Assembly: GCA_002189035.1 (NCBI GenBank)
Contig: NEEC01000024.1
Coordinates: 62,001 to 126,000 of the forward strand
Source: Utricularia gibba
Taxonomy: Eukaryota; Plantae; Magnoliophyta
DNA: 64,000 nt
Direction: 5' to 3'
Part shown: piece after piece, positions 28,876-58,489 of the stretch
How the letters are laid out: each line of letters opens with the position of its first letter
Numbering within the stretch: the stretch's first letter is position 1
Made by a program: the position numbers and the translations under genes
The notes under the pieces: generated by a model
Seen by the model: only the letters and a program-made list of their open reading frames with translations
Database searches by the model: none
Told to the model about the DNA's origin: nothing

Positions 28876-28878
28876 CGA

Positions 28879-31720: not shown

Positions 31721-31744
31721 AATCTAATCGTAACCCATGCTGTA

Positions 31745-32999: not shown

Positions 33000-33810
33000 T
33001 ATGAATTCGAATAAAAAAAGGTCAAAACGTGTGTTAGTCAAGATATTTTCGATAAAAATGCGATTTGGGCCATTTTTTCCTTAGTCCAAGTTCAAGGTGG
33101 TTTTATTGTTCCTCCAAGCCCATGTACGTCCAGCTCATTTGGGTTGGGTCGCATTGTCTGTCCAATCTGAAAAGTTGTTATGAGTACATCAGCAAAACGA
33201 GAATTACAGGTCTGAATGCGGAGGAAAAATAAGGTTGGCAAGAAAAAGGCAAGAAAATCGCAACAAATGCAACTAACTATGACTGAGACACGAGACTAGT
33301 GTGAATAATGAAAGGAAAAGATTTGCTGCCTATATAATTCCTTTCGTTCCAGAATATTTCAAGCCGCGAACAGAGACTTCTTCTGTTTTAGAGAGATTTT
33401 CTCTCCCAAGATTTCGGCGATTGGAGTGGAAGTGAAGATGAAGGAGAGGCGTTCTAGCGTGACACTTCATCAGAAGTGCAGGTGAGACCCAAATGAAAGA
33501 GAAGGAGGCTTGGGAACCTACAGTTTGAGAAGAAGAAGACACGAAGAACACAAAACTAGAGAATCGAACAAACATTTTACTTTTCTTGCAAATCTTATTT
33601 CTTGCATCAATGTTTTCATCATCTCATTTACGTACTATATTATTTGCTTTTACTTCAAAAAACAGTAGAAGCCTTGCATTGATTTAAGATAGAGTAGAAA
33701 CCACTTCCAGAAAACCCCTCGTTTAATTCTGCTTACACATCAAACCAACAACTAAAAATTGTTTGCTCTCTATAGATCGACCTGGACTTACTGCTGCTAC
33801 ACTAATTTCT
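33000..33810 (+). repeat. Probable Athila-type LTR fragment
   Basis: CTATATAA box, purine-rich then T-rich segment, and a ...CTCTATAGATCGACCTGGACTTACT... tail resembling the GTTCGACCCT tail of the other Athila LTRs here. No termini found. Confidence 0.4.
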
Positions 33811-34889
33811 TAATGAATGAAATGTGGTTTTTTTGTTCAGTTTATATATTTCTTTTGATGGGGAAAACCTTTAGACTTGCGATATCTACAAAATTTTCCA
33901 TCTGTCACTCACACAAGGGAATAGAACCGTGGAAGTGTATTGGCAAGAAATGAAGGTGTTGATGATTCGAGCCAATATAATATAAGATAGGAAAGGTACA
34001 ATGGCAAGATTTCTGTATAGTTTGGTAGAGTGGCGGAAGAGAATTTGAAGACCCTCCCGCCTAAGGAATCACCTCTATTTATTTACTGTGTTGATAAAGT
34101 GTTTATCAAAATACAGTAGGCAGTGAGTCGAATGCTGTTTGACATGAGATGTCAGAATAAATATGTGGGGGTTCATGAGATGAGCTGACCGAACATGTAA
34201 CGCTGAATAACATGTGCATGGTATTTTACATATGTCAACACAATGTTATTCAGATTGCTTTATGGAAATCCTTCGACTTGAGGTTTCATTGTGTCTTATA
34301 TATTATTGCCTTAGATTTGTTACTATTTAGGCTTGTTGAAATATACAAGTCAGCGATAGTGATGGTCTAAGTTGATAGTATATGAAGATCTTTGAATAAC
34401 CAAGATGGGATTCATTACTCCGGGTAAACGGAGATGAGACTTCAGATTTCCTGATTGTTTCGTCGGGTAAATTCCTGGCCAGGTTGTCGAGATGTTGGAA
34501 TGAGATTCCAAGTTCTCGTTTTGCCTTCGAAACATGTGTTCAGGATAATGTTGATGATCTAGATTAAATGGAATTTGACTATCCATGATTCCATTCCAGA
34601 TCGAAGTCTTCAATGAAGGGATATTCATAAGAATAGCAATCAAGGTTCATTATTGAATATTGGATATAGTTTTAATTGGGTAAAGACAATATTCTATGCT
34701 CGGCATCCCTTGTATTTTATGAGAAACACGATATCTTGGGACAATATCGTTGTTAGAGAAATGAGATTTCTCACCTCTCATTGCCGATTAAAAATGAATC
34801 TAGTAAGTCACACACAAAGAATTAGAAGTTGTCCGAGACGCTTGTGATTCAAGTTTTGGTAGACTCTAGCATGTCTTTGAATTTGGATC

Positions 34890-35450
34890 ACATGTTGGTT
34901 AAACATTGGTTATATGGGCCCAAGCCCATATAGGTAACCAAGGCTCAAATAATATGGGCTGATGATTTGGGCCGCTAGGCCCAAGCCCATATTATTAGCC
35001 ACATTGAAATGCATGCCGCATTAAAATGCGTGCCAATACTAGGCTATAAATAGGAGGCAGTTGGCTTATTTCCTAAGGTTTTGGAGTTCTTCTTCTGGGA
35101 AGAGGTGTTCAAGCTCTGAAAGAGGAAAAGCACTTTAGGAAGAAACGAGACCGGTGAATAGCGATAGGAAGAAGAGAACTCGACTCTGGTTTCGAGTTTG
35201 GTAATTTTCCTCCGCTTATTCCACGTGTTTCTTCTGTGTTGATAGTTAGTGTTGATATGAGATATTAGCATTGGCTTTATTGTGTTTTCCCAATATGTTG
35301 ATTCAAGAGTTGAGTTAAGTCTTGATGTTAATATGAGATATTAGCATCAGATGGATGTATATTCCATGAGATGGTCTAAACATATTTTGGGCAAAATGTA
35401 TGTGATACATTTGTTGGTTTAACCTAGTCGGATTTATTTCTAGTTCGTGT
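34890..35450 (+). repeat. LTR-like promoter fragment (clustered TGGGCC/GGCCCA motifs followed by CTATAAATAG)
   Basis: Motif layout typical of a Gypsy LTR U3/R region; no termini or PBS. Confidence 0.45.
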
Positions 35451-35663
35451 GGATGAGCTAGAGGCATCGTTGTTTCGGTGCTATAAGCGATATGAGATAT
35501 CGTTGGTTATGAAAAGGGAAAAATTTTTGTTTTTCCCACCCTCCGCTGCGTGTAACCCAATAGTGGTAGTTTTTGTTAGTGATATGACAACGTTCACATA
35601 AAAAACAATAATAATGTTTTATTTTTAACATCACTAGCGTAAAATAAATAAACCCGTTGGTTA

Positions 35664-35952
35664 CGCCTAACCTACGTGCGTATTTTCGTATTTGTTGAAA
35701 AACATTTAAACACATTCAATCTAAACCAACAAGGAAGGTCGAGCGCTGTGGGAATTTTTCCAGCATTAATACCACGTAATTTATCCATTCGATCCAAATG
35801 TGCCGTAAATATTGAACGCTCTAATATTTATTCCACGAATTTTGGATGTATTATTTAATGCATTCGAGCTACTTGGCGCGTGAGGATCGAGCGCTTTTTT
35901 ACCGTTAGCCAATCGATTCATACACATCGATAGTGGCGAACGGGAGCACAAA
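35664..35952 (+). repeat. Inverted, diverged copy of the region upstream of the 43.9-45.6 kb gene
   Basis: Colinear with the reverse complement of ~45722-46020: ACGTGCGTAT, CAACAAGGA.GGT.GAGCGCT, ACCACGTAATTTAT, GGATCGAGCGCT, CCAATCGAT.CATAC. Confidence 0.8.
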
Positions 35953-35959
35953 AATTTAG

Positions 35960-37070
35960 TTTTACTGCCTAGTTTTATATTTTTGCGCATAAACACCGTG
36001 ATTGTGTTATTTTAGTCTTAGTTGGGACTAAATGGTAGATTTAGTCCCAACCTTCTAATAGTTTTATTCGAGTAATGCAGTGCAGGTCACAACACAAATC
36101 CCAAGGAGCCGAATATGCATAGTGTAGTGGCAGAAGATGAATCCAAAAGTCTGAAAAGTGGTACACACAAAATCCAAGGAGGAAAAAGGGAGATTTTGGA
36201 CAAAAGGAGGGAAAGTTGGAGAGAGAAGGCAGATCTCCCATTGGAGACTCACGACAAGTTTCTGGAGATTTTTCTGGAGGAAGAAGAAGGAAGGGAACGA
36301 CGAACCAGAAGAACACAGCTTTTCCTTGAAGATTTATTTTCGTTTTTTATGCTTACTGTTCCTAGCTAAGACTAGATTTGGATTTCCTGCATGAACAAAT
36401 TGTCTTTTCTACTTCTGCTATATATTGCTCATTGTTGTTTAGCTTTGAAACAAGGATATTGCTTAGGATATGCTATGAAAACGTTTTCCTTTACCTTATC
36501 ATGAGTGGCTAAGCACTTAGGGGGTCCCTTGGGGTGAAAAGGGGAGAAATATGCTAATCCATCCTTAGACCTAATGAACCATCAGTCACACCACTTCCCT
36601 AACAAACCAGGATAGATCCAGGAGGGGGAAATAGTGAAATCCAACTTGACAACCCTAATTAGAGGTAGACCAAAGATTAGGGGGAAAAACAAGTATCCGG
36701 GTAGACCTGGATCTTGTGAGTTAGTTGTATGATTTATGATTTATGTGAGCTTGTTTAGTGATAGGCATATATTCCCTAGGAGTCCCAAGGTATCACCCAT
36801 TCCATTCCAAAAACTACCGAATCCCAAAACTTGTTACTTTTCTTTACTGCATTCCATTGTAGTTCTGTCTTATTCCTAATTAAGACCAAATTTTACCAAC
36901 GTGACACTAGTTTCATGCTTTGACTAATCACTTGACAAGCACCTGCTCTTCGTGTTCGACCCTGATCACTATGCTCATTATTGTTTTATGCTAGAATGTA
37001 TATTAGGTTATAAATTTATTTGATAGGAGAAATTTTCATTTAACGACATTGCATAATTTTTCGTTTATCA
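35960..37070 (+). repeat. Athila 5' LTR (left end uncertain)
   Basis: Homologous to 39975-40360 and 41099-42236; CA terminus before the PBS. Confidence 0.85.
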
Positions 37071-37073
37071 AAT

Positions 37074-37091
37074 TGGCGCCGTTGCTGGGGA
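37074..37091 (+). promoter_or_regulatory. Primer-binding site (tRNA-Asp)
   Basis: TGGCGCCGTTGCTGGGGA, one mismatch from the Athila-type TGGCGCCGTTGCCGGGGA. Confidence 0.9.
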
Positions 37092-37257
37092 GTGGTGTTT
37101 AATTGTTTTGTGATTCGGTTGATGCATTTGCGTTCTTCTGGTGCATGTGATCTTGTTTTTCACCCTGCACAAGAGTACTATCAGCAAGAACCACACAAGA
37201 GTGAGAGAAGCAGCAAGGTTGAGCAGACTCCCTACTGTTACTCAAGCTAATTGCAAT

Positions 37258-38950
37258 ATGGCAAAACAGGAGAAGACCCTGAATGAGCTTGATGCAGCCG
37301 ACCATACATACAGAGGGCTGTGTATTAGGTTCTCTGCACAACCAACGAATTAAAGCCAGCTATGATTAATTTTATGCCCAAGTATTATGGAAAAGTGGGT
37401 GAAAACCCTCATGAACATCTTGATAATGTCATTGTTGTTTGCACCTCTTTCAAGAGTGCTGGTATGACTGAGGATGCCATCTGTTTGAGGGCATTCCAAT
37501 TTACATTGGAAGGAAGTGCAAAAATGTGGTTCAACTCTTTGAAGCCTGGAAGTATCACAGATTGGATTGGTATGAAGAAAGTATTTCTTAGCAAATATTT
37601 CCCTGCTTCAAAAGCTGAAGGAATAAGGAAGGAAATCAGTGATATTGAGCAGTCAAATGGCGAATCTTTACATGAATATTGGGAGCGTTTTAATCACTTG
37701 CTAGGCTCCTGTCCACACCACGGATTTCAGACCAATGCATTGGTCAAGTATTTTTATGATAGTCTTCTATGCATAGATACAGCCATGGTGGATTCTGCAG
37801 CAGGTGGGTTTTTGAGAAAAAGACTCCCACAGAAGCTCTTGCATTGCTTGAGGAGTTGGCCGAGCACTCCAGACATATAATCACAAAACATGCCTCGAAT
37901 AGAAGGGTTTATGAACTGGAATGCAAGCCAAAGTCATCAGAAAGTGAGTTGACGAAAATGTGGCAGCCACAATGAGATGATGAAGGAACTATTTTTATTC
38001 CAAGCTAAGAATATGCCTTGCAGGAACTGCCACAGAATTGGAAACATTGCTGATAAATGTCCCGAATTGATGGAGGAAGAACATGTGAAAGCAATGGGAT
38101 ATTTGGAGCCACAAAGGAAGAAATATGATCCCTATTTGAGCACCTACAATCTTGGATGGAGGGATCATCCAAATTTCAGATGGAATAATAGTGATAATTC
38201 TTACAAGGGTGAGAGTTCATCAGTTGGACAGCAAGGATTTCGGCAAAATTTCCAGAAGCAGCAGCAACGTTCTTATCAAGCTCCACCATTTCGCAAGCCA
38301 AACTAGTAGATGCAACAGCAATTTCAGCCTCCAAACCAGAATAATTCTGGAGGAAATTCTGGAAGTTCATTGGAGGATATTTTGAAGACTTTCATGACCC
38401 AATCAATCAAAAACCAAGGTGAGAACCAACAAGCTATCAAGAATCTTGAAATTCAAGTTATTGAGCTAGCAATAGAGGTTGGGGAGCTGAAGCAAAAAGG
38501 AAGCCTGCCGTCGCAAGCCAAACAAAACCCCAACTCTAGGGGAGGACAGAATATCAGCGCAATGACATTGAGAAGCGGAAAAGAAAAACCTCGAAGAGAA
38601 TTAGTCTAACCTAAGAGTAATTTAGAGACGGCAGAAGAGCCTGAAGTTGAGGTGGAAGGAGATGCTGAAGAACAAGAAGTGGAGATTGCTACTGAGCCTC
38701 TTGTGGTAAAAGTAACCCCAACACCATTTCCAGGAAGGCTGAAGGCGAGAGAGGAGCAAAATGAAAAAGAAAAGATGTTGAGAGCCTTGGGAAATACCCA
38801 ATTAAATTTGACATTGCTCGAGTATATTGACTTGGTGCCCAAAAGTGTGAAGTACCTGAAGCAGCTCTGTATGTCAAAACCAAAATTGAAGGAAAAAGGC
38901 AAGGTGAAGTTGAGTGAGAGTTGTTTCAGCCCTTTTGACTTGGAAACTAC
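37258..38950 (+). pseudogene. Athila gag, multiple stops and frameshifts
   Basis: GENPHEHL, LRAFQFTLEGSAKMWF, SLHEYWERFNHLLGSCPHHG, STYNLGWRDHPNFRW, ISAMTLRSGKE, split over several ORFs. Confidence 0.88.
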
Positions 38951-39974
38951 CTAAAAAACTTAAGGACCCTGGAACATTTTTTATTCCTTGCAAAATAGGT
39001 GACCTGAACATTAGGAGAGCCATGGCTGACCTGGGAGCCTCCATAAACGTGATGTCTTTTTCTGTATATGAGACTCTCAGGTTAGGACCTCTACAAGCCT
39101 CCGGAGTGCAAATTGAGCTTGATGACCGAAGAGTTATTTCTCCAAAAGGCTTGGTTGAGGATGTTCTTGTGAAGATTGAGCAGCTTGTGTTTCCAGTAGA
39201 CTTCTATGTGGTAAATATGCGTGCTGGAAGTTTGAGGGATACAACCATCATCCTTGGAAGGCCATTCTTGAGCACTTCCAATGCCATAATTAATGTGAAG
39301 ATGGGCACAATTGAGTTATCCTTTGATGAAGAGAAGATTACGCTGGACATGAAAGAGGTGAACAATTATCCCAGCGATTTTGAGAGTGTATGCTCAGTGG
39401 ACGTGATGGATAAATTGGTTGAGGAGCATATTAAGAAGGCTATCCAAGAGAAGGAAGAGGAACATGAAGAATCATTTTTTGCAAGGGTAGAAGCCGAAAG
39501 GGGTTCAGAACAAGTGAATGCTGTGCAAGTCAAGACCCTGGAGGAGAGGGAAGCTGAGTTGAAGCCACTGCCCACACATGTGAAGTACGCATTCTTGGAT
39601 GAAGAAATGAACAACCATGTTATCATCTCAAATAGTCTTAGCTTAGATCAAGAATCGCAACTACTGGACGTGCTGATTAGGAACAAGAAGGCGATTGGCT
39701 GGACTCTTGCAGATATTGAAGGCATCTCTCCTTCTATATGTATGCACGGGATTCTATTAGAAGATGGAGCAATGTCCGCCAGCCACAAAGGCGCCTCAAC
39801 CCAAATATGATGGAAGTGGTAAAGAAGGAAATTGTAAAACTTCATGATGCAGGTATAATCTACTCCATTATAGATAGCGAATGGGTGAGTCCAATCGATG
39901 TGGTGCTCAAGAAGACTGGTATGACAGTGGTAGAGAACGAGAAGGGAGAGATGGTGCCTCAAAGAATCCAAAAT
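38914..39974 (+). pseudogene. Athila protease and RT N-terminus
   Basis: KLKDPGTFFIPC, AMADLGASINVM, ILGRPFLST, QPQRRLNPNMMEVVKKEIVKL, SEWVSP; stops abruptly at VPQRIQN. Confidence 0.9.
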
Positions 39975-40360
39975 AGGGGGAAAAACAAGAGTCCAGGTAG
40001 ACCTAGATCTTGTGAGTTAGTTGTATGATTTGTGGTTTGTATGAGCTTGTTTAGTGATGAGCATACATCCCCTAGAAGTCCCAAGGCATCACCCATTTCA
40101 TTCCATAAACAACCGAGCTCCAGAACTTATTACTTTTCTTTACTGTATTTCGTTTTAGTTCTACCTTAGTCCTAGCTAAGACCAATTTTATCAACTTGAC
40201 ACTGATTTCATGCATTAACTTTCACATAGCAAGCACCTGCTCTTCATGTTCGACCCTAACCACTATGCTCATAATTGTTTTATGCTTGAAGGTGTATTAG
40301 GTTATAAATTTATTTGATAGGAAGATTTACATTTACGACGTGTAATTTTTTCGTTTATCA
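39975..40360 (+). repeat. 3' portion of an Athila LTR
   Basis: Colinear with ~36678-37070 (roughly 80% by eye); ends TTTTCGTTTATCA. Confidence 0.9.
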
Positions 40361-41098
40361 GGCAGTGTCCCATTTCATTCATTTCCACCTTGATTGTAGC
40401 CAACAAGCTTTAATGAATACAACAGGTAGTCATCTCATGCCAATTCTATCTCTCATTCAACCATTGTATCATTGAGTCATCAACTCTTGATGTGTATTGA
40501 ACAAGTTGATAAAATTAGTTAAGCCAACCCACTATGAATCTAATTCCATAATTTAAACATGTCATGTGTAGTGAAGAGCTTGACTATAACCAACAACTCT
40601 ATCAACTAAAAATGACTATGATTCTCCTTATGTTAGTGGGAGGAATTAGCATAATTATTTAGTAAGGGGTTTTTCCATAGGAAACTCTTGCACTATGAAT
40701 ATCGATTCCCTATCATATAGGTTTTTTGACAACCCTTGCCTTTTCGTTCACCACACATTACTTCCTTGGATTTTCAAACACAATAATCAAAAATCCTAAT
40801 TGACCCAAGATGCTTTGGTCACAAATGAATTACCAAACATCTCATGCACTGATAATTCATCAATGTAATCATGCTCATATAATTAAAATTCGTGCATAAC
40901 CCATTATGCACAACAACTACACATGCGCAAACCATCAACATGATTTGCATATACACAAAATTCATAAATCTTGGAAGCATGAAACAACCATACGATTCAT
41001 AAAAGAGAATCTAACATATTCATCACATGCTTTTATGACAATAATCAACATCATACGAGAACATCTTAGAAAATCATAACAACAATTTCTTAAAGAAT
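40361..41098. other. Unassigned A/C-rich non-coding segment, possibly a minus-strand LTR fragment
   Basis: Composition only; no ORF, termini or in-window homolog recognised. Confidence 0.25.
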
Positions 41099-42236
41099 TG
41101 ATAACACATAGTTTTGAGTGCTTCAGAAGAGGAAAATGATTAGTATTATGCTACAAAACTTAGATTTTATTGTGTATTTCTGCGTTTTTGTGATTAGCGA
41201 CCGTATTTATGTCTTTTACTCTTAATTTAGATTTAGTCCCGATCTTAGTTCTAATCATTTCCTTGAGCAATGTCAGTAATCCAAATCCCAAGAAGCCAAA
41301 AGAGAATAATGAAGTTGCAGAAGATGTGGACAAAAGTTGAATGAAGTACACCAAATCCCAAGGTGAAGAAAAAAGATGATTTTTGAAATGATGAGAAAGA
41401 GAAAATATCTACAAACACTTAGAAAAAAACCCCATCAACTTCTGGGGAGAGAGGGGAAGAGATCTGGAAAAACTTACAGGAAGAACAAAGAAGACGAATC
41501 AGGAATCAAGCCCTCTTTTTAAGACTTCTCTTACTTATGAAGAGCATTACTCCTATCTGAGAATAGTTTTAGCTTTTTTGTGCAACTATTTACGATTCTA
41601 GTTATTGCTTATTTTGTTGTTTCTTTTCTTCATGTTAAGTTGTGGAACGAAGATGGTTTTAATGTTATGTTATGGAGTATGAGTAGCTAAGCACCTAGGC
41701 TTGGGACCAAAAGGTGATAGTGTGCAAATCATCATTTTGATCTTATTAGTCATAAATCACACTACTTCCTTAACAAACCAGGATAGATTCAAGAAGGGGA
41801 GGTAGTGACACTCATCTTAAACAACCCTAATTAGAGGTAGACCAAAGATTAGAGGAAAACAAGAGTTCGGGTAGACCTAGACTTTTGCTTGTTAGACGCA
41901 TGATTTGTGGGTTTGGTGAGGTTATTTTAGTGATAAGCATGCAGTCCCTAGAAGTCCCAAGGTATCACCTTGATTAATTTCATATAAAAACCTGTTTTTA
42001 CCCATTTATTGTTTTTCTACATCTTATCGTCGAACTGCCTTAGTGTGAGCTTAAATTAAATCTCTTAACTGTGACAAAAACAGCATGCATCAACCTTTAC
42101 ACAACAAGCACATAGCTCCTTGTATTCGACCTTGATCTACTATACTCATATTTTTCATATGATTGATTGTGAATTAGGCTATAAATTTATTTGATATGTG
42201 AATTTGCAATTCTAATGACTTGCATAAATTTTCGTT
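41099..42236 (+). repeat. Athila-type solo LTR, more diverged subfamily, last bases missing
   Basis: Starts TGATAACAC. Shares ACTTCCTTAACAAACCAGGATAGAT, ACAACCCTAATTAGAGGTAGACCAAAGATTAG and GGYTATAAATTTATTTGATA with the 36-37 kb LTR. Ends TTTTCGTTT without ATCA. Confidence 0.85.
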
Positions 42237-42930
42237 TCCTACCTTGTTACGAGGGGGTTGTCAAGGATTGCTAGGTGTCTAGCAGAGGTGGTATGGTGAG
42301 GATCATGCACCCACACACATTTTCGTAGTCCATCTCCTATGAGGATCGGACACCCCAAGCGTGGGAAGGTGTTGGTAATGGCCTGGCATCTAGAGTGTAG
42401 GTCACAGATCTTTATAATTGGTATGAGAGCCAGGTTGTGAAAAGGGACTAGGAACCTGGAAGGAAACACCGATCCTCTTGCTACCCCACCACTGCCAGGC
42501 ATGATAGTAGATATTATATGTGGATTTGGAACATGATTATGCTGCTATATGAAATAGGAGATGAGGACTTGGTATGGGATTAGCACAGTAGAGGTGAATG
42601 TAATGATAAAATAAGGTGAGATCGATCAGCCAAGTAGTCATACAAAGAATGTGCCTATGTGGAACTTGAGTACTAGTGGTGTTAGATTGGTGATTGGTGT
42701 GATCAATGCATAGAGTGGAGGATGATAAGTAGCATGTACAAGGAGATCTACATGGCCTCAGAGGGCGAGTAGTGGAGATGTGATTGATGACTAGACATGC
42801 AATGTATGGAAATGGATTATTTTGATGGTGTGACAGAAAGTGTTGGGAAGGAACTTTTAGGGGATAAGCGATGCATAAGGGAATAAATTGATGAGAGGAG
42901 AGGCACCAACTCCAAGGGTGTTACCTCTTT
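42237..42930 (+). mobile_element. Degenerate Tekay fragment (LTR end, PBS, leader, gag start) related to the 58.5-64 kb element
   Basis: AGGTGTTGGTAATGGCCT...TGGTATGAGAGCCAGGTT (PBS-like at 42419-42431) matches the reverse complement of ~63876-63950; GATGAGGACT matches the gag start at 63757. Confidence 0.75.
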
Positions 42931-42949
42931 AGAATTTACGGCAGGAGAC

Positions 42950-43110
42950 ATGAACGCGGTTCCAATTCCGGTTAGGTTCTAGGACATGAGCGTCCATACG
43001 GTTCCGGTTCCAGAATCGGAACCATACCATTTCGGTTCAATTCGACATATTTGGAATCGTCGAATTGTTGGTTCTGACCCATGCGGAACCAATGGTTCGA
43101 AACCGTGAAC
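42950..43110. repeat. Cluster of GGTTCC/GGAACC motifs, possibly the subterminal region of a non-autonomous DNA element
   Basis: Repeated CGGTTC/GAACC motifs in both orientations; no TIR or TSD identified. Confidence 0.35.
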
Positions 43111-43489
43111 TACTATGGGTACTATGGGTGTCAAAATAGCTTACTCTAGGCATCCATATGGCCCATTGTAGGTGCCTGCGAATATTTGTCTATTATAATT
43201 TAATGTTTTCAATTGATCCTTAATTAGGTAGTGGATCTAGCACATGTTTTCGAAATTTTAACTATTTCAATTGATTTTAGAAAAATATCAATTGTGTAAG
43301 TGTGTGAGAAATCTACCCATTCTTTTTAATTTTTTTTAATTTTTAACAAATAAAATTGATGTATTTTAATCTTTATCAATATAAATATAATATTTTTTAA
43401 TATTAAAAAAATTATATCATAAAATATGTATAAAAATGAAAAGAATATACATATCAGTAAATCGATAAAAAATAGTATGCGCTCGATAC

Positions 43490-43725
43490 AAAAATGGATT
43501 TTCCACCGAGCCGAGTTCATATTTTTTTTTATATTTTAAATTTATCTTGTGCACTAGCTCCTTAGGTGTTATTTGGAAACTGCTCTACCGATCGAGTGTT
43601 GTTTTTTAAATTTGTAGTATGAACACGTGTGACCGTGTTCCACACACGTAATAGCGATCGAGTGCCGGTTTTTAATTTTTGAGAACTGCTATAGCGCTCG
43701 ATTCACATGCATTATATGGATCGAG
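43490..43725 (+). repeat. Hairpin-module array (GATCGAGTG type)
   Basis: CCTTAGGTGTTATTTGGA, repeated GATCGAGTG and GCGCTCGAT; same orientation as the 25.7 and 32.2 kb arrays. Confidence 0.7.
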
Positions 43726-43869
43726 TAGTTTTGACAACCGTACACAGACAACAACATCGCACGATTGAAATGCACCTATTTCCAGAATTCACCGAATGGA
43801 AGCAGGTGTGCGTAGCTGTTACATTGTCATATTTCACAAGTTTATATCGAAAATTCAAGTTAAGACATA

Positions 43870-45611
43870 TCATAGTCCATATTTCTCTCTATATCTATCC
43901 AGAATCAATTTTTCCCTCTTCAGTTCTTTGATTTCCCGTTCTTGCTCATCAATCTTCTTGTCACTCTCTTTTAACATGTTTTCGAGGGTGGCCAATGTCG
44001 CCTCATAACCATCCCTTCTCTGTTCATATATCTCCGCAGCAGCGAGCTTGAGATGTATCTCTTCCATCGATTTCTCGTGTTGTATTTTCTGGTCCACCCA
44101 TGCATCTACTCTTCTCTGCAAAACAAATAATTTTGCCTTATCATCACCTGCAACACACCAATGCTTCATCTCCTTCCTCAAAACCTCCACTTCGGTTGTC
44201 TTCAGCGCTAATTGTTGTTCAAGATTTTCAAAGTCTCGTATCTTCATTGTCGTGGAGAGTTCTTGAATTTTCTGGTCTCTGCTTGCAAGGTCATCTTTGT
44301 AGTTCTTAATGATGTTCTCCAGAACAGTGATGTGCTCTTTCAGTGGTTGAATTTTGTCATTGAGATAAACAACCTGAAATGCATATGGTAATACAGTAAG
44401 CAAAGAAGAGCTGGAATACAGTGAGGTAAAAAGCATTCATTTTACAATGTCACAGAACATGAACAGACTTTGAACCAAAATCACTAATGCTTGCATTGCG
44501 AATTCACCAAAATATGTAAATAAATCCGACAAGCTCACATCTTGTATTTCTTCTTGATCTTCAGTCTGTGTTCCTTTGGAATGTACCGTAGCCTGTTCTT
44601 CCAGATCTTCGGTCTGAGTTCCGTGGCACAGTACCTCACGATGTTCATCCAGAACATTAGTCTGCGCCCTTTCTTCAGTGGTATGTGGTAATGAAGCTAC
44701 CTGCTATCAACAAAGTTTAATCAGAGTTCAACAGCTTAAATATACTCATACGCACTTGTTCCAATGCTAGAGGCTGTTCCTGTTGATGTGCAATTGGCTC
44801 GAATGCTACGATATCCAGCTTCCTTTTTTTGCTTGGCCTGGTGTTTGTGGGCAGTGGAATATGATCTGATTGTTGATGCCACTCTTGAATTCCATGAATT
44901 CTCTTGAACCCTGCAGTGATATAATTATTGAACCATGTGGTTAAAATTTAACACCAAAGAAAAGTAAAAAACAAAAAAAAAACAGTTTTACCTTTGTGTT
45001 GTGACTTGGGCAATCAACTCTGCCTGCTTGTATGACTTATTCGCAAGCTTTTTTCGCATTTCTTCCCTCTCAATGACAGGTAGAAATTCTTCTTTCTTGT
45101 GGGGTTTTACACTGTCTGGACCAACGTATGTTCGCGGGAAATTCCATTGAGCTTCAACAGGCGGCGTAATCCACAAAAGCTTCTTTTTCCATTTTGGAAA
45201 ATTGGAAGGCAGATCATCGATAAATTTGTACCCAGGGTTAGCTTGAAAATACCAACTAACATGCTCAGAAGCGTTTGATTTTTTCCCTTTTTTGAGTTGC
45301 ACCATTGATAGCAATCTAGGAACACTTGCATCGTACCCTTCTTCCACACAAAATTGGAAAAACGCCCAAAGTTGGATAATTGAACCAGGGGTGATCATAC
45401 AAAGGGGCATGCAAACAAAGTTGAGCAATTCAATAATAAAAGGCAAGAGTGGAATTTGCAAGCCTATTCCGAACATTTTTCTGGGCACAAGATACGCATT
45501 TGGAAGAGTCTGCGGAGCAGGGTCCGTCAACTCAGTGCCCATGGACGCAATCTCAAGACCGTATTCTCGTGGGATTTGGTATTTCAAGCGAATTTTCTCA
45601 ATTGCATCCAT
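43870..45611 (-). CDS. Four-exon Transposase_28 (PF04195)-like plus coiled-coil protein; first splice junction out of phase by 1 nt
   Basis: Exon 1 45611-44992 (IRLKYQIP...LQIPLLPFIIELL...TPGSI...WYF...LPSNFPKWK), exon 2 44910-44756, exon 3 44700-44539, exon 4 44373-43870 (long heptad-rich coiled coil). All three introns are GT-AG; introns 2 and 3 are phase 0 and open. Confidence 0.7.
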
Positions 45612-45734
45612 GGGTGTGGTCGAGGTTACTAACCTGAAAGGATAGACTAGAGAACAACTGACGCCAAATTGGAAAGTTACAGCCCTGATGTTGCGATTAG
45701 GAATCGGTGGAAGGCTACTTTTGCCCCAATCGTG

Positions 45735-46020
45735 TTCCCCTTTCGACACTACCGCTATGTATGGATCGATTGGGTGACGGTAAACAGAATAATAGCGCTC
45801 GATCCTTAAGCACCATATAGATCGAATGTATTAGATAATACATATTAAATTCGTAGACTAAATATCATAGCGTTCGATATTTACGTCGCACTTTGGTCGA
45901 ATGAATAAATTACGTGGTTTTAATTGTGGAAAAAATCCTATAGCGCTCCACCCTCCTTGTTGATTTAGTTCGAATGGTTTAAATTTTGTTTAAATAATAC
46001 CAACATACGCACGTCGGTTT
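45735..46020 (+). repeat. Hairpin-module region upstream of the Transposase_28-like gene
   Basis: GCGCTCGATCCTTAAGCACCATATAGATCGAATG and related motifs; homologous to 35664-35952 (inverted). Confidence 0.7.
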
Positions 46021-47060
46021 AAGCAATCAATCCACTCTTTGGCTGAATAGTTTTATATAATTTCAAAATATATTTTTATAATTTTTCAGTACTGTTTTTA
46101 TCTACTTAATACCTCAATCTTCTGACTTTTTTAGGCAGAATTAAGGTTGCATAATATTACTACATATGATGAGGCGAATGATGATGATGATGATTCACAC
46201 ATTACTTGAAGTAGTATGCTGATCTCCTATCATGTTATCATTGGTGTTGAGATTTTTAAATGTTTTAATTTAATATGAAGTACTAATTGCATTCTAGTGA
46301 TTCATGTGCAAATAGGGCAAATACCTCAACTTTTTTATTTCCTTTACAATTTACCCTACTTTTATAAATATTTTGCTAATTATCAAAAAAATTAGATTTT
46401 TTTTTTTATATTTTACCTCAACTTTATGATTTTCATATTTATATTCCTAACAAAATTGTTAAAAAAATGTATTTTTTAATACGTTAATATTGTTAATAAT
46501 ATATTTTGAATTTAGAATGTAACATTTCAATTTTAATAGGTTTTAATATTTAGGATTTAGTTTTTTTTTAATTTTGGATTTAAGTTTTAAAATTTAATGA
46601 TTTCTTTTGATACATGAATATTATAAATACTCACTTGTCTTACATAATAATTTCTTTTGATATACAATATTTATTAATAATAAATTTTTTATATAATCTA
46701 ATTTTCATATTCCATCTTATCATATGTTTGATATTTATACATGAAATTTATTTCATTGTTTATCTTTAATATAATATTGAAAATTTTTTAACGAAAAACA
46801 ATGTATCACATTTTATTATTCTTATTATTAGATTTTGAAATACTTTAAATTAAAAACATGTTATAAATAAGGTAAAAGGCTAATCAAACACTTCTGACAA
46901 GGGTAAAACGACGAAGGAAGTGATTCACAAACAATAAATGTTTTTGAATAATAAGGGTTCAACGTGGTGTGAGAACATGAGCATCGTCGTGTGAGAACCT
47001 GAGCATGGAGAGAGGGGCAAAGGACAAGTCATTAATCATCTACTTTCAAGTTCAAGTCAC

Positions 47061-47092
47061 CAAAAAACAAAAAACAAAAAACAAAAAAAAAA
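47061..47092. repeat. (CAAAAAA)n A-rich simple repeat
   Basis: Direct reading. Confidence 0.85.
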
Positions 47093-47219
47093 CTGTAGAT
47101 GACGAGTCTAACTCGTTACGGGTCGGGTAGAGGTTTGACCCTTGACAGGTCGACCCGTCTGAATCCGCCCAGTACATATTGACCCGACGAGTTCACCGTC
47201 GGGACTCGACCCGTGCCCT
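47093..47219. repeat. GACCCG/CGGGTC-rich segment with short hairpins, probable end of a non-autonomous DNA element
   Basis: Repeated GACCCG motifs in both orientations; stems CCCGACG/CGTCGGG and ACGAG/CTCGT. Confidence 0.45.
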
Positions 47220-48564
47220 CCATTTGTCTGTCCTCCTGTCTTTGCTTTTTCTTTTCTTCTTTTTCATGCCTACAGTTTCACTACCAATTCCATTAGACTC
47301 CACTTTTGCTGCTTCATCTTCCTCTGCATCTCGTTTTCGCTTCTCTTTCTTTTTCTTCTTCTCAGTTGCAGGCTTGCCCTCCTCAACATTCCCCCCTTCA
47401 CTGGTTCAGTTGCCTCCCCATTCTCTGCATATTGTGGATATCAAAACAAATGGGGGGTTAGGATAAAAATATGTCCACCTGCTAATGTTAATGAAAAGGG
47501 ATCAACCAACAAAGGGCTGCGTGCATCAAGTAATAGTTTCAAAGAGAGTAATCAAAACCTTTAATATCGACAGTTTTTAGAGCAGACACCATCACGTCAA
47601 TATTCTTCCTAGGAGCAACACCGTTGTCATAAAAATCTAATCGCTCCTCCACTTGTTCCCGTAGCTTCTCTCCAAAAGCATTTGTATTCTTCTCTGTGAT
47701 ACAGATGCATATTTATCTACACGGTTAATTCGTTACACATGAGATCTAATAAACAATTCAGAGAGGAAATGCCTAGTTACCCAAGAAACAGTCAATACGA
47801 GACGCAATGGAGCATTTGTTGGCAAGATAACGAGCCATGCGTCCTTTATTTCGAGCAGCTGCCCGACCAATGAATGAAGAGTGAAAAATAAGTCCATATT
47901 TTGGAGTGTTCCCACGTGTTTTTAATGCCCTGGAGATAACAAAGAAAACATTCATTAAAAAAAAAATCAGGTATCAATAGCAGCCAAAAAGAAATAGGCA
48001 CCTTAAGAAATATACCTGAACAGAGCTTTCTCTGCACCAAGAATCTGAAGAGTTGATGAGGGGCACTTGGCCAAGTTCGTAAGACTACCAGCATGTGAAA
48101 TTAAACGGGCGCCAACAACTTCACCAATCAATGCAGCCAAATTGGGGGCTATATCATTCATTTTGGTAACCAAATAGTCATGAAGCTTCTTTCTGTACTC
48201 GGCAAGGTCCATCACCCTCTGTGCAAATAGCTTTACATTGATTAAATCGACGGGTGAGAGATCCTGACCTGACAATAGAAATCCATGTAAGCATAGATCC
48301 ATGGTAAACAACACAATATAGACGGCATGACAATCATAAGCAATGACCTATAGATGGCACATCTTAACAAACATACCCATGGATGCCTTGGCAGCTTCTA
48401 TGATTTCCTTTGCCATGTCTTCATCCCCAACTATGTCTGTGAGACCTGATAAATGGTCTTCCGACAACTTAGATTTGTCCTCCACATACTTTGCAACTTT
48501 TGCGTACAAATAATTGTCGGTGACAATTTTCACTAACTCGGGAAAATGCCAAGAGTACCATTCC
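47193..48564 (-). CDS. NOP56: Nucleolar protein 56 (box C/D snoRNP core), 3' five exons only; partial or interrupted gene
   Basis: Exons 48564-48377, 48268-48016, 47929-47781, 47693-47559 and 47424-47193, with in-phase GT-AG introns. [11 protein letters not shown]...[59 protein letters not shown] is NOP56-type (NOP58 has KHATPKYG). The K/E-rich tail needs one more G in the G6 run at ~47391-47396. Confidence 0.92.
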
Positions 48565-48789: not shown

Positions 48790-49350
48790 AACTAGCAAGG
48801 AAGTAGAGCTAAGTTACGAATAGGGAATTAAGACAGCAAGTCTCCCACACAGTCACCCATCACCCATCTTGGCGATCACGCCTCACTCCTCATCCACCTC
48901 CGCTGCACCCGCCTCGCCATCGGCCACGCCACCTACACAGGAAAGAGTAAGGGGAGTCAGTCCTATGCCACACGGTTCCCTCCTCAATCTAGACTACACG
49001 TGTTCCCAAAGTTTCCCCTCCACACGAAGCATCACATCAGTTCACACACATTGCCCCGCAAGGCATCTCCTTAACTTCTCGTATCAGCTCGTTGTTCATC
49101 CTAGGCATCTCCGATGTTCTCGTAATCGATCTGAACACCTTCCCATACCGAATCCTACACGTTTGGCACCTCTCCCACTGAGCACAAGTGCTCAGCGTTG
49201 CTGCCACGACCGTAGTTCGATGGCCCCGCTTATTGCTCACATGGCATCACGATCCGCGGCTTCGCCGCGTTGCCATTGGGGGTGCACTCCCCAATCCCGG
49301 TGTAGCTCACAACTCCTCGATCACACAGCGAGGTGCCTCGATCACACAGC
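48790..49350 (-). repeat. Internal LTR fragment of the same Tekay family as 58490-59362
   Basis: Colinear with ~58490-59020, roughly 85% by eye. Confidence 0.88.
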
Positions 49351-49660
49351 ATAACCCACACCCGACCCTTAGGAGTCATTTGGATCAAGTGGACATCACA
49401 AGGGCACAAGGGCGTAGTTTACGCATAACCCACGCCCGTGTGGCGTTGGCATGCTGCTGCGTACGCACACGGGCGTGGTTTACGCATAACCCACGCCCGT
49501 GTCGCGTTGTCATGCGGCTGCGTATGCACAAGGGCGTGGTTTACCCATAACCCACGCCCGTGTGGCATTGTCATGCTGCTGCGTGTGTCTACGGGGACTT
49601 GCTTGCGATGCTGTTGCGTATGCACACGGGCCAGGCTGCAGCACAAAGTGAGTAATAGCC
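49351..49660 (+). repeat. Third copy of the 0.9-kb unit, hairpin part
   Basis: Matches ~25060-25365. ATAACCCACGCCCGTGT occurs at 49425, 49486 and 49547 (spacing 61). Confidence 0.9.
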
Positions 49661-50076
49661 GAGCAAGGATCTTTTACGTGGAAACCGCCGGAAAGCGGAA
49701 AAACCACGGAGCTGCCGGAGCTTGCTGGAAAAGAGTTTCACTAGATGAAGATCGCTAAGAGGAGAATACAAATTGAAGAAATCTTTTTTTTGTCCCCCTC
49801 CTTCTTGTCATAATTCCGTTTATTTATAGGATAGCTCACTCTGACCGAATTTTGGTGTCTGCAAATATCGGTTGCTTTCTGCTCCTATTATACGATCTCG
49901 CTTTTCATATATCGGCCGCCTATTATACTGTAATTCGGCCGCTTTTCAGAGTGTCATATGGCCATACCTGTCAGATTTTTGACAGACGTCGATCTGTCGT
50001 CTGGCATTATCCCCTCGGGATCTCTTTTGGTAGCCTTTTAGGAACCGATTACCCTTGGCTGATTTTTCCCTTATCA
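49661..50076 (-). repeat. Retand 3' LTR (terminal ~111 bp missing)
   Basis: Matches 58028-58447 with ~25 differences in ~420 bp (about 94%). Confidence 0.95.
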
Positions 50077-50088
50077 TTCAGCCCCTCT
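50077..50088 (-). promoter_or_regulatory. Polypurine tract of the Retand element
   Basis: AGAGGGGCTGAA immediately before the LTR start TGATAAGGG. Confidence 0.75.
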
Positions 50089-50549
50089 GATTCGCCGATA
50101 TTAGCCCTTTTCGGGGTAAATCGGGGGATCAGAACTACTACGATACCGATTCTTGAGCTGCCGCTTCCCCGAATAAGCCACATGCCGTTCTCTGCCACGC
50201 GTTGGCTCGTTGGCACGCCATGTTTTTTCCCGCTCATTCTGGGTTCCCCAAACATCACGATGCTTCGTCTCCCTAACCTTTCCTGTATAAATAAGTGCCC
50301 TTCGCGTCAGTTCTTTCCTTTGCCCTCTCTGTTGCCTGCAAGAGTTTTGTGCCCTCCGTGCTCTGTCACACTCGTCTGCCGCTTGATCGTCGCGATATCC
50401 GTCGGAAACCGCCAATTTTCCAGGTATCATTCAGTTCTTCGTCTTTTCCATTCGGTCTTCTGGGATTTTTGACGGGTCCCCCTTGTCATTCTATGTCCTT
50501 CCCCCTTCCTGACTCCTGCCTCGTTCTAGGGTTTTGGGCTTCTTTGAAA

Positions 50550-52797
50550 ATGGGTAGGAGATCTAGTGAACTAAACATCCCCTCCCTTCGCATTCGGTAC
50601 TCGATCCCTGATGAGTACCAGCTTTCTCATGCTCGGGATACTGAAATCCCTTGGGGGGTAGGTGAGGACCCCCTGCCTCCGTTCAGTCTCCCAATTCCAC
50701 TTGCCTATTTCGAAAGCAGTTTATGCTTCCCTCTTCACCCTGTAATAGTCCGTTTTCTTTATACCTTTGCAATTCCGATTTACTGTCTCGCCCCGAATTC
50801 CATATTCTGCTTTACCACTTTCCTTTTCTATTCGGCCGGTATGGATCCGGCTATGACTCTGGTAGACTTCTGTCATCTCTTCAAGATAGCCGTTCGTAAA
50901 GCTAAGTCCCCGATGGATGGCCGATCTCACTTTCAATTCCGCCGATTCGAAGATAACCCTAACTTTGTTGTTAAAGCCCCCGATACCCACCATGATTGGT
51001 GGGTCTTCTTTCATTTGGATAGCTCCCCCTTTGGGTTCTCGGTGGAACTTCCCAGTCGATCCCCCAACTCCTTTCAGGATCAAGATCTTGGGTGCGTATC
51101 GGTCTTCTTCCGAATCTCACGAAGTCCTTTATGAGAGGCTTAGTCGGGGCTCATTTCGGTATGAGTCTCGTGCCTTGATGTTCTCGGGTGAGTCGTTGAA
51201 AAGATCAGGTATAATCGGTCGTTCCCGAGACCTCCATTGGTCCGATATCATTCCTTTCGACGGCACCGATTCGAGGAGCCTTCCTCTTAGCCCCTCTTCA
51301 TCCTTCCCTCTTGTTCCGGCTTCACCTCCGATTCCCCCACCTGTTCAAACTGGGGCTCCCAAGAAAAAGAAGAGGGTTAAGGCAGTTGCGCACAAACCCT
51401 CAAAGAGGCAAGGAGGTAGTCGGGTTCAGCTTTCCCGAGTCTCAGAATCGGCAATATGCTTTATTGCTTTTCCTTCTTTCGTTTTCAGCTGAAGAGATGG
51501 CTCGAGGAAGCTCTATGGAAGATTCGGTGATGGCGCGATTCTCTGCCGAGATGCAAAGGATGCAGGAACCCGAGGATCCCTCCCCTGCACAAGTCTATCT
51601 CCTATTTAACAGTTACCGCGAATTCCCGATTATAACCTTTTTTTCGGTTTTTCTTTCAGGCTGATATGATTGGAGCTCAGCTGGACGCCGCTGATCCTTC
51701 CTCGGGGGAAGATCAAGTAGTAGAAGTTCCTGAGATCCGGGAGTTGACTCCCCGTCCTTCAGCCGGGAAAGGGAAAGAAAAACTTCCTCCATCACCCGAT
51801 CTCAGCGATACTCCTATTCCTGATGCAAGATTCTTTTCGGCTGGTGCTTCAACATCGGCTCTTCCAATCGAGTTACAGAGGGATTCTGCCCTCATAGAAG
51901 TAAGGGACAACCCGGTGCTTCCTCTACCTTCAGTTCCAGCTGAACTAAGGGGAATCCTGGATGGAGCTATGTCTAGTACCTCGGGTGTTCAGCCGGAGAC
52001 GGTACTTGAAGGGATCTGGCAGGTACGTATCCCGTTTCCTCTTCTAAATTCTAAGTAGTCGGTCCTTGACTTGGGATATTCTTTCAGGCTCTGACTCTTG
52101 GGTGGGGAATGGTTAGAGAGATTGGCTCTCAATCGGAGGCAGTCTCTCGGCTTCAAGCCCAAGTTGTGGCTCAGAGCGCCCAGATAAAGCTGTTGGAGGA
52201 GGAGGGGAGTTCGCTGAAAACCGTTTTAGGGAAACGCAGCCGCCAAGAGGAAGAACTACGAAATGTGATTGAAGAATGGGAAAGGCGGTTGACGACGCTC
52301 AATCAAAGAGAGAGGGCTTCAAAGTCCGATTTGAAGAGGCAAAAGCGGAGTTAGAGCATGCCATGGGCCGCATTTCAGCATTGGAGGCCGAATTACTTGA
52401 TCGACAAGCATCTCGGCAGGGTCTTCTGGATGACTTTGTCAACTCGGCTTGTTTTGCCGAACTCTCCGATATCTATGCAGGAGATTTAATCAGCTTACTT
52501 CTATACCGTCAGAGACGACAATTCAGCCAGGAATTTAGGCTTTCAATCATGGATGCGTGCTTCGACAGGATAAATCCCTTGACGAAGGATGAGAATATGC
52601 TTGATGTTATCGCGAATACTTTCCAGGCCCCGGAGTTCGGGTTTGAAGCTGATCGGGAGCGACTGATTGTGCTAATTCGGGCAAGGATAGGGCGAGAGAA
52701 TGACGCCAAGCAAAGGGCAAGGATGGAACGGCATACTGGTTCCTCTGCCAATCCTCCCGATAATCCCCCATCCCTCCTGTACTTTAGTAATTTTTGA
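50550..52797 (+). pseudogene. Retand antisense extra gene: Transposase_28-like domain + low-complexity linker + coiled coil; four exons, two frameshifts
   Basis: LRIRYSIP...LCFPLHPVIVRFL...LAPNSI. Introns 51416-51488, 51593-51659 and 52023-52087 are all GT-AG and frame-preserving. Frameshifts near 51010 and 52270-52330. Confidence 0.8.
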
Positions 52798-53577: not shown

Positions 53578-54566
53578 TTAGGCGTAGAACTTCCTTAGAT
53601 GCGATGCATTCCACGACCTTGGGAGTTCCACGCCATCTAATTGTTCCAGGCGATATGCTCCTTTTCCGATCACCCTTGAAATACGATAAGGGCCTTCCCA
53701 GTTGCGGTCTAATTTCCCGACGTGTCTTTGTGGTTGGATGCTTCGGAGCACCAAATCTCCCTCGGAGAATTCCCTTGGGGATACCGAGTTGTTGTAACTC
53801 TTCTCCGTTCTTCTCTGATAAGCCCCTAGTCGGCTATAGATGCTTCGTCGCTTCTCTTCCAACAGCTCCAATTCCAGTTTTCGGAGTTCAGTATTCTCTT
53901 CTTCGTTATAATGCTCTACCCGGTAGCTCTTCAAGGTCAGTTCGATAGGGCATATGGCTTCTGAACCGTAAACCAATAAGAATGGGGACTCTTCCGTGGT
54001 GGTTCGAGGGGTAGTGCGATATGACCACAGTAACTCATCTAAGTGATCTGCCCATGATCCCCCAAAATCTTCGAGCTTAGTCTTCATACCTAGTCGGAGC
54101 GTTCGGTTCGTTACCTCTGTGAGGCCATTGCTTTGCGGGTGATATACCGAGGTGAAGTTGTGCTTGACCGAATACTTATCCAGGAATGCATCCATTTTTC
54201 CTCCGGCGAATTGAGTTCCATTATCAGTCACTAGCTCTCGAGGGATTTCGAACCGGATGAAGATGTTTTTCCACAGAAATCGGATAACAGTCTCCTCCGA
54301 GATAAATATTCAACACCCACGATGACGAATTTCCTTTGACCCGAGGTGTGGGGGAAAGGCCCCATTATATCCACCCCCATCGGTCGAAGTGGCAGGAGAG
54401 TGGGAGAGAGGTCAGTTTGCTTATTGGTTTTCTTGGTATACTTGCATGGTATTGGCACACTTTGCACTTCACCATATTGGTAATATCCTGCTTCATAGTT
54501 GGCTAGTAGTACCCGGTTCATAGAACTTTCCGGCATAAGGATCGTGTTCCAATATGGCTGCCGCAT
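53578..54566 (-). pseudogene. Retand integrase, frameshifted
   Basis: MGVDIMGPFP, TDNGTQF, SVYHPQSNGLTEVTNR, LLWSYRTTPRTTTEESPFLLVYG, GKLDRNWEGPYRI. Confidence 0.92.
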
Positions 54567-55660
54567 TCACCCTCATGTAGATCGGTTATGAGTTCTTGAG
54601 AATGCTTTGCCCCGATGCACCTCAATAAGGGTCCATCTAAGGATTTGCGATAGAGAATTCCATTCACCAACGTATACCTCTTCACTCTAGTCTCTAACTG
54701 TCGGGCTTTCGGCTTATCAGATGGGGTTCTCCCATTTTGTAAATACCGGATGTAGGGCATCGTCCAGTCATCAAGGGGACTCAGTTGTGAAGAGATATTG
54801 TTTCCCGGTTGCTGGGTGATATGATTCACGGCTCGTAGGCTCTCCGAAGGTTGGTCCCACAACCGAATTGTCACACTTCCTTCTCTTAACTCATGAAACC
54901 CTGCTGCGAATCGGGCGAGGCTATCCGCGGACCCGTTTTTCTCACGTGCTATGTGCGACAGGGTGAACTCCTTGAAGGTTTTAGCCAATTCCTTCACCTA
55001 GACACGGTATAGAGCCATGAGGGAGTCATGGGTTGCGTATTCTCCCGAAAACTGCCCTTGCACAAGCCGCGAGTCGGTGTAAACGTTGAGTTCTGCCACT
55101 CCCAGCTCCTTGGCGATTTTCATTCCCTCGATTAGGGCTTCATATTCGGCCACATTATTGGAGGCAGGGAATAAGAATTTCACCGTAATATAAATATGCT
55201 CTCCTTCTCAGGTTCTAATGTCTATCCCTCCTCCGGCGCCATTGTATGTTGAGCCATCCACGTACATAGCCCATCGGTCATTGGCTTCCATGAAACTGTC
55301 TATAGGCCTGGTCATTTCGACCACAAAATCAGCAAGAGGTTGGGCCTTGATTGCTGTTCTCGACTTAAACTCAATATCCATTGTACTTAATTCAACTGCC
55401 CATTTGGCAACCCTTCCGGAAATCTCTAGACGAGATAGGATGTTCTTCAGAGGCTGATTGGTGAATACCACAATGTGCCGATCTTGGAAATATGACCTCA
55501 ATTTGGTGGCTGCCATCTTCAGAGCCAAGATGAATTTTTCTGTCACCATATAGCGAGTTTCAGCTGGTAACAAAACTTTGCTTACATAATACACCGGCAA
55601 GTGATTATCTGCCGAGATGGTTGTCAAGACTGCGTTGACTGCAATGGCGATATAGATAGA
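54518..55660 (-). pseudogene. RNase H-like domain followed by additional archaeal-type RNase H
   Basis: LPVYYVSKVLLPAETRY, AIKAQPLADFVVE, WAMYVDGS, ASNNVAEYEALIEG, YTDSRLV, HIAREKNGSADSLA. Confidence 0.9.
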
Positions 55661-55821
55661 TATAGTCCTAAGGGGGTTCCATTGGTTCCATTGCTTGCCT
55701 AGGGGGTTCCTTTTCTACCATCATCACTCGACTTTTTCGTGCAGGGGTCCCGACAAGAAGATACGTAATAGGACCAGGCGGTTGGTTGGTCGATACCCAT
55801 TGTGCAAATGCCCTTCGACGT

Positions 55822-56573
55822 TCAGAATTTGATTCTCAAATGCACAGTGGAGGGTAACATACCGAATTGGTTGATGCCGGGTCGCCTGAGGATGATGTTG
55901 TACGAGATCTCTGAATCCAGGATCAAGAATTCCAACCTCTCGGTTCGGCTCCGCCCTGCTGCTCCGAATGTTACGCGCAGGGTTATTTTCCCGATATTTT
56001 GCACGGCCTGCTAGTCAAATGCGTACAACTCCATGCGCACATGGCGAATATTTCCCTCGTTAGATGACGCCAGTAACTCGGCCACTTCCTTCTTCATGAT
56101 GTTGCACGAGGATCCTTGATCGATAAAAATCCTCCTTACCTTGGTGCTCCCACATATTCTTGACACCACCAAAGGCTCATCTCTCATTGCTGGGCTGGCC
56201 GTGAGAAGCTGATCTCTTCCTTTTCCCAAGCAGCTTTCTCAGTCGGACCATTTCCGATTTCGAAAACTACTCCTCTTCTGGCTTCATCCAAATATCTCTT
56301 CCGTTCCTTTCCGGACACATCCATCTCGGTTGCTCCGGATATCATATGGATTTCTCGAATATAGGGGGGACTACCCTGCATTTGATGGGCACTACGTGAA
56401 CTTTCCGGTAGGTCTTGTCCTCCTCCAAGATTCGGTTCCCTGTTGGCTCGCAAGTTCGCCATCCCCGGTTTCGGAGGGAATTTCGGATATCGGTTCCCTT
56501 CGTTCCCCATTCGCTCGTTACGTCCTCTTTTCCGGTCCGTCATTGATGTGGGGTTCCGCATCGCGTTGTTCAT
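55822..56573 (-). pseudogene. Gag-pol linker and aspartic protease, frameshifted
   Basis: EIHMISG, DEPLVVS, VRRIFIDQGSSCNIM, YNIILRRPGIN, STVHLRIKF. Confidence 0.85.
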
Positions 56574-58482: not shown

Positions 58483-58489
58483 TAAAAAT

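Follow-up and report, generated by a model that had tools for sequence, protein, structure and literature searches.

The gene described here lies on the minus strand, at 45611..43870, of a 64,000-nucleotide stretch of Utricularia gibba DNA, referred to below as the window. Direct reading of the sequence gave four exons separated by GT-AG introns, as an earlier note on this DNA had stated, with a total of about 476 codons. The ATG is at 45611 and the stop at 43872-43870. The parts of the gene are as follows.

45612..45749, minus strand: leader; the frame is open upstream of the ATG as far as 45749
44992..45611, minus strand: exon 1, 206 codons + 2 nt (620 nt); TRP28 (Transposase_28) domain
44901..44991, minus strand: intron 1, 91 nt with the in-frame acceptor AG 44902/44901
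44756..44900, minus strand: exon 2, short (145 nt); its translation contains a basic KKRK motif resembling a nuclear-localisation signal
44701..44755, minus strand: intron 2, 55 nt, unusually short among plant introns
44539..44700, minus strand: exon 3, 162 nt, phase 0; acidic low-complexity linker (14 D+E, 3 K+R)
44374..44538, minus strand: intron 3, 165 nt (GAT/GTGAGC ... TTTCAG/GT)
43870..44373, minus strand: exon 4, 167 codons plus stop (coding part 44373-43873, 501 nt); all-helical, of coiled-coil type

Slashes within sequences mark splice junctions. Exon 1 ends at the donor AAG/GTAAAA (phase 2) and exon 2 ends at 44756 with CAA/GTGCGT (phase 0). The phases read 2,0,0, where the earlier note had left the first as 1 or 2. 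In intron 1, the first AG (44912/44911, CAG/G) gives an 81-nt intron and a frameshift, and a stop is reached in exon 3. The second AG, 10 nt beyond the first, is the sole acceptor that gives an open product, just as had been noticed before. The dependence of junction 1 on this second AG for its frame and the small size of intron 2 (just 55 nt) are the weak points of the gene model.

The long stop-free character of exons 1 and 4 was also confirmed. Exon 1 together with the upstream leader runs for 253 codons without a stop, and exon 4 for 188 codons. Because about 0.063 stops per codon are expected at the ~40% GC of this DNA, ORFs of these lengths are far beyond chance. The GTQTED repeat reported inside exon 3 is present in two copies. 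A putative 5'UTR intron is suggested by a possible donor GT (45752/45751) and by an acceptor-like AG (45635/45634) that lies 22 nt ahead of the ATG. In the searches and structure predictions described below, the exons were searched and folded one by one.

The TRP28 domain and its relatives

The Pfam model PF04195 (Transposase_28, TRP28) matched exon 1 with an E value of 5.8e-4 and 20.5 bits, which is under the cut-off of 26.2. A HMMER search of exon 1 against 1.84 billion proteins returned 33 matches with at most 32% identity, and the named ones were angiosperm proteins annotated as 'Transposase (putative) gypsy type'. PF04195 was present in 24 of the 24 database relatives placed in the alignment (A1), with a best E value of 1.2e-16. 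The HMMER check proposed earlier thus found a PF04195-like match, below the cut-off when made directly and carried by every aligned relative. ESM features of exon 1 gave values of 0.96 and 0.95 to PF04195 clusters. The conserved TRP28 region spans ~200 aa, about three times the length of the 69-position Pfam model, and the PNS motif conserved in the family reads PGS in the focal gene. Judged by its sequence, exon 1 is a diverged but real TRP28 domain.

An HMM built from the A1 relatives scored the focal ORF at 141 bits and the TRP28 ORF of a Retand-like element in the same window at 44 bits, scores that are biased by the selection of the relatives with the focal query. With this HMM, no TRP28 gene copy was found in the window beyond these two ORFs. 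A word search with exon 1 and the leader gave no match, and the control search with the Retand-like TRP28 ORF likewise gave none. The lack of close kin of exon 1 is therefore uninformative, and points to poor database coverage.

Among the TRP28 proteins, one of ~846 aa from Gossypium (P0011, P0034-P0047) forms a cluster of 36 members at >=90% identity from many species. Its members lie on A12 and D12 chromosomes, have RefSeq LOC identifiers and isoforms, and show a weak PHD-type match. From its sequences and annotation, this cluster looks like a conserved host gene, against the statement that TRP28 is absent outside TEs.

Structure prediction, also proposed earlier, gave confident models for the two large exons. 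The AF2 model of the TRP28 domain (44991-45749, minus strand; alignment A1) is an alpha/beta fold of ~200 aa with a pLDDT of 82 and a core above 90. We found no neighbour of this model in the PDB with Foldseek (best E 0.22), in a wide VIA-align search (best Z 2.4) or among the predicted viral structures of BFVD (best E 0.5). The model of exon 4 (pLDDT 88) is all-helical, with helices at 2-42, 45-75, and 79-164, and Pfam gave only sub-threshold coiled-coil families for it. The combination of TRP28 and a coiled coil also occurs in the database relative P0030 and in the Retand-like gene. A TRP28 ORF with a coiled-coil part on the same strand, one of the criteria for a Retand-lineage antisense accessory gene (aORF-3R), is thus a feature of the focal gene, and its earlier description as a TRP28 and coiled-coil gene of the Retand aORF type was upheld.

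The Retand-like gene lies at 50550-52797 on the plus strand, antisense to the minus-strand gag to integrase region at 53581-57604. A TATA (50286-50293) and a likely 5'UTR intron (50424-50529) precede its ATG at 50550, and the coding part has three introns. This copy carries two frameshifts, one near 50985 in exon 1 and one near 52300 in exon 4. The ends of its element are permuted: segments A, a 61-bp array, and B follow each other on the 3' side (48884-50078), and B and A on the 5' side (58028-59020), which is why its LTR boundaries are not simple.

The earlier note had ascribed the same exon plan to both genes. The order of the parts is indeed common to them: domain, basic motif, acidic or low-complexity part, and coiled coil. 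The two genes differ in exon sizes, in the intron 1 phase, and in where the basic motif lies. The coding exons measure ~866/103/363/710 nt with phases 1,0,0 in the Retand-like gene and 620/145/162/501 nt with phases 2,0,0 in the focal gene, and the basic motif is KKKKR in exon 1 of the former and KKRK in exon 2 of the latter. Only exon 1 can be aligned (25% identity over 192 aa, E 2.5e-5); exons 2-4 of the two genes have no sequence similarity. The 5' layout is comparable, with an acceptor 22 nt before the focal ATG and a 5'UTR intron just before the Retand-like ATG. A shared exon plan is therefore loosely true as a resemblance, and orthology of the introns is putative. At both loci, a single spliced gene seems to include the TRP28 ORF and the coiled-coil ORF as exons; surveys based on ORFs give such ORFs as separate entries.

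Flanking arrays and neighbouring elements

The focal gene is surrounded by repeats and by relics of several LTR elements. A gene of the Nop56/58 type lies on its 5' side.

1-24937: 313-bp satellite
26067-30207, minus strand: chromovirus-like gag-pol
35655..35950, plus strand: inverted second copy of the 5' flanking block, 80% identical to 46035-45735
36552-42237: cluster of Athila-like LTR relics, 1.6 kb from the 3' end of the focal gene
36552-37070: LTR, with a polypurine-like tract before it and a PBS (TGGCGCCGTTGC...) after it
37362 to 39967: gag (37362), protease, and the start of RT in the downstream Athila-like element; at 39967/39968 the RT start joins the middle of the element's 3' LTR, the second LTR copy
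41150-42237: third LTR copy with a homologous 3'UTR
42376-42522: chromovirus fragment
43478..43740, no strand assigned: 3' flanking tandem array of 66-70 bp units with the motif (A/T)GCGCTCGAT, oriented as in the 5' block
45735..46035, minus strand: 5' flanking block of three tandem units of 73-75 bp, with ATAGCG(C/T)TC at the start of each; CpG o/e 1.9
46036-47150: spacer of 24% GC, beyond the 5' side of the focal gene
47200-48560, minus strand: Nop56/58-type snoRNP gene with three collinear intact exons (Pfam Nop 29-207) and a lysine-rich tail

The PBS TGGCGCCGTTGC... that follows the LTR at 36552-37070 is presumably of the tRNA-Asp type, and the elements are called Athila-like for this reason. 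This LTR is common to two internal regions (cluster 36036-42237). The second LTR copy, which runs from mid-LTR to 40360, is 85% identical. On the other side, the Nop56/58-type gene is cut at 48884 by the Retand-like sequence and its 5' part is missing from the window; the focal gene has the same orientation and lies 1.2 kb downstream of the apparently intact part.

We found no pol relic near the focal gene with tblastx in 40361-43870, 46020-47200, or 30500-35655, and detected no LTR, PBS, or PPT of the Retand type around it. LTR-like or TIR-like repeats closely bracketing the gene were limited to short module matches at the level of shuffled sequences. Rfam and tRNA scans found nothing. The focal gene thus does not occupy the aORF-3R position, which in a Tat/Retand element is antisense to gag-pol, with pol on one side and the 3' LTR on the other. 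Its placement outside any recognisable Retand/Tat element, without gag/pol, LTR, PBS, or PPT, was borne out for the Retand type; Athila-like LTRs occur 1.6 kb away.

The flanks had been described before as hairpin modules. Repeats are present on both sides, and they are tandem units of 66-75 bp with short palindromic arms of the TCGA type. Folding of the array blocks was no better than that of shuffled sequences (z -0.14 and -1.34), and the hairpin part of the description was not supported. The presence of tandem arrays in the gene's own region, another of the aORF-3R criteria, is a feature of this locus. The 5' block contains a TATA-like CTATATGG and is a putative promoter and 5' leader region of the focal gene.

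The arrays are linked by similarity to others in the window. The stretch 43512-43577 resembles an array at 32313-32373 with 76% identity, and the chain continues from 32184-32380 to 25779-25986 and from 32224-32258 to 49357-49391 (91%). The last of these falls at the start of a 61-bp array (49359-49627), which precedes the Retand-like TRP28 gene and is part of the 3' region of that gene's element. By these similarities, the arrays flanking the focal gene are members of one repeat superfamily with the 3'-region array of the Retand-like element. The order of array, upstream region or promoter, and TRP28 gene is common to both loci.

Other repeats were seen in this part of the window. The 61-bp array at 31790-32410 is bracketed by an inverted repeat, 31437-31719 and 32939-33220 (66% over 288 nt). 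A reading in which the 61-bp arrays at 25.0 and 49.4 kb (93% identical) are the LTRs of one giant element around the focal gene was considered and rejected, the similarity being limited to 269 bp of tandem units.

CpG o/e is 1.5-1.9 in the array blocks, 0.35 in the Athila-like relics, and 0.56-0.69 in the Nop gene and the exons of the focal gene. A comparison of the two 300-bp copies shows CpG columns conserved as well as other columns, with no excess CpG loss. The motif AGCGCTCGAT has nine matches in the window, six of which fall in three array blocks (35738-35895, 43478-43702, and 45794-45878); none of 100 shuffles reached nine.

The two ~300-bp copies (35655-35950 and 46035-45735) are inverted and 9.8 kb apart, with Athila-like relics between them. 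Such a pair could be taken as the ends of a second vehicle, a non-LTR unit with the gene as its cargo in which the Athila-like elements were nested later, and whose TRP28 protein would bind the AGCGCTCGAT arrays. The 80% identity of the pair and the concentration of AGCGCTCGAT in three blocks, with its CpGs retained, are in favour of this. On the other hand, the two arrays immediately on either side of the gene have a direct rather than an inverted orientation, and they are related to those of the Retand-like element. The left block is sharply fused at 35950/35951 to a 5'-truncated Athila-like fragment (3'UTR-PPT-LTR), and the pairing may have resulted from rearrangement.

Origin of the locus

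We consider that there is about an even chance that an old element of the Retand/Tat lineage, distinct from the adjoining Retand-like family, left this locus as a detached accessory-gene module, with its backbone lost. This reading is favoured because of the TRP28 membership, the shared architecture, the linked arrays, and the same order of array, upstream region, and gene. The source would be the module that lies in the stretch from pol to the 3' LTR in Retand/Tat elements of the Ty3/gypsy group and is antisense to gag-pol. This module would comprise a spliced gene and the upstream region belonging to it, and on either side would be the short tandem arrays that are typical of this section of an element. 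An antisense gene keeps its introns through retrotransposition, since they are opposite to the strand of the genomic RNA.

The predicted product of ~476 aa would have an N-terminal alpha/beta TRP28 domain (~200 aa), the KKRK motif, the acidic linker, and a C-terminal coiled coil (~165 aa) through which it would form dimers or oligomers. From the literature, it may be a nuclear regulator encoded by the element. The gag-pol region, LTRs, PBS, and PPT would have been lost, likely by deletion and by nesting in an old AT-rich TE cluster beside the Nop56/58-type gene. About half of the Retand elements have tandem arrays in the region concerned, and non-autonomous copies exist (PMC11963269); PF04195 is given as specific to Retand in PMC6317226.

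The family of the focal copy is only ~25% identical to the Retand-like element 5 kb away. The copy is almost intact, with one splice junction out of frame at the expected acceptor. This intactness is no proof of selection when set against the observed decay of the Athila-like gag-protease nearby (LTRs 15% diverged), which has three in-frame stops and one frameshift in 2.6 kb. This rate of decay predicts about two disruptions in the focal gene, where zero to one are seen, so its intactness is not exceptional. Three observations count against a detached module. No pol relic, LTR, PBS, or PPT of the Retand type was detected around the gene, and the nearest LTR elements are Athila-like by their PBS. 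The flanking blocks are rich in CpG and conserve it, unlike long-methylated junk. The gene also has the same orientation as an apparently intact part of a host gene and lies 1.2 kb downstream of it.

The last two observations would fit an exapted or host-retained gene of retroelement origin that stands alone beside Nop56/58, is expressed and nuclear, and uses the CpG-rich array block as its promoter. We regard this as possible, though rather unlikely. It agrees with the four open exons and canonical splice sites, with the genic neighbourhood, and with the upstream block, which is CpG-rich and shows no excess CpG loss. The TRP28 cluster shared by the Gossypium A12 and D12 chromosomes is a possible precedent. 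Under neutral decay in place (~10% per lineage, estimated from the 300-bp blocks), the chance of the gene's intactness would be <1e-5, from a model that overpredicts damage; by the Athila-like yardstick, intactness is not significant. A host gene would also have to use the second AG at junction 1 and an intron of 55 nt, and to have PGS for the family's PNS. It would have no relative above 32% identity among 1.84 billion proteins, which the control search makes weak evidence.

Another unlikely reading is that of a dead pseudogene fragment, in which exons 1 and 4 are ORF remnants, the short exons 2 and 3 owe their open frames to chance, and nothing is expressed. Exons 2 and 3 have 48 and 54 codons, with a chance of ~3-4% each to be stop-free in one frame, and more when splice sites can be chosen freely. 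Neither has detectable homologues, and the frame problem at junction 1 and the 55-nt intron 2 are in accord with a fragment. Against this, there are six good splice signals in the right places and phases, and the succession of basic motif, acidic linker, and coiled coil is that of family members. The ORFs of 253 and 188 codons are, moreover, far longer than chance would give.

It is distinctly unlikely that the TRP28/coiled-coil gene has left the retroelement, whether to become a lineage-specific host gene or to be carried as cargo in a unit with CpG-rich AGCGCTCGAT arrays at its ends, which the gene's protein would recognise. The separate hairpin-array vehicle proposed in the earlier note is the least supported reading and very improbable, for it comes down to one inverted 300-bp pair with no target-site duplication at its outer ends, no transposase or other mobility gene, and no second copy of the gene within the window.

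Relation to known systems and significance

The closest known genes are the TRP28 extra ORFs antisense in Retand elements, such as ORF4 of Silene Retand (Vicient, 2025, PMC11963269; Vicient & Casacuberta, 2020, PMC7264820). These have an N-terminal TRP28 domain, a basic motif, and a coiled-coil C-terminus, as in the focal gene, and they likewise have short tandem arrays beside the gene and their own upstream region. The focal gene differs in its lack of gag-pol, LTR, PBS, and PPT, in its Pfam score below the cut-off, and in having PGS for PNS. The Retand surveys (PMC11963269, PMC7264820) describe ORFs and no spliced multi-exon gene.

Elements of the Tat type have Smc-like or coiled-coil antisense ORFs (PvRetro13 ORF2, maize Grande gene23, and rice RIRE2; PMC7264820), which resemble exon 4 in being long coiled-coil ORFs antisense to pol, and a nuclear role has been suggested for them (PMC7264820). 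In contrast, the coiled coil in the focal gene and in its Retand-like neighbour appears to be the last exon of a TRP28 gene; the likeness is drawn from descriptions of those ORFs. The PMD (PF10536) proteins MAIN and MAIL1 (PMC5418596, PMC7156037) offer a precedent for a TE-borne domain that is also found in the form of a free-standing nuclear gene of the host. TRP28 belongs to a different Pfam family, and these proteins are likened to it as a precedent only.

The simplest view of the locus is that of an ordinary relic within a TE nest. Antisense TRP28 genes are characteristic of Retand, and a nearly intact copy free of the backbone is a candidate in which stand-alone action or retention can be tested. 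The motif arrays beside the gene are candidate binding sites; the array binding and the anti-silencing role that the earlier note proposed for the protein are conjectural. If the gene does act outside a retroelement, it would be the first TRP28 gene shown to be functional outside a Retand element and would provide a testable DNA target for a domain whose model has no neighbour among solved structures.
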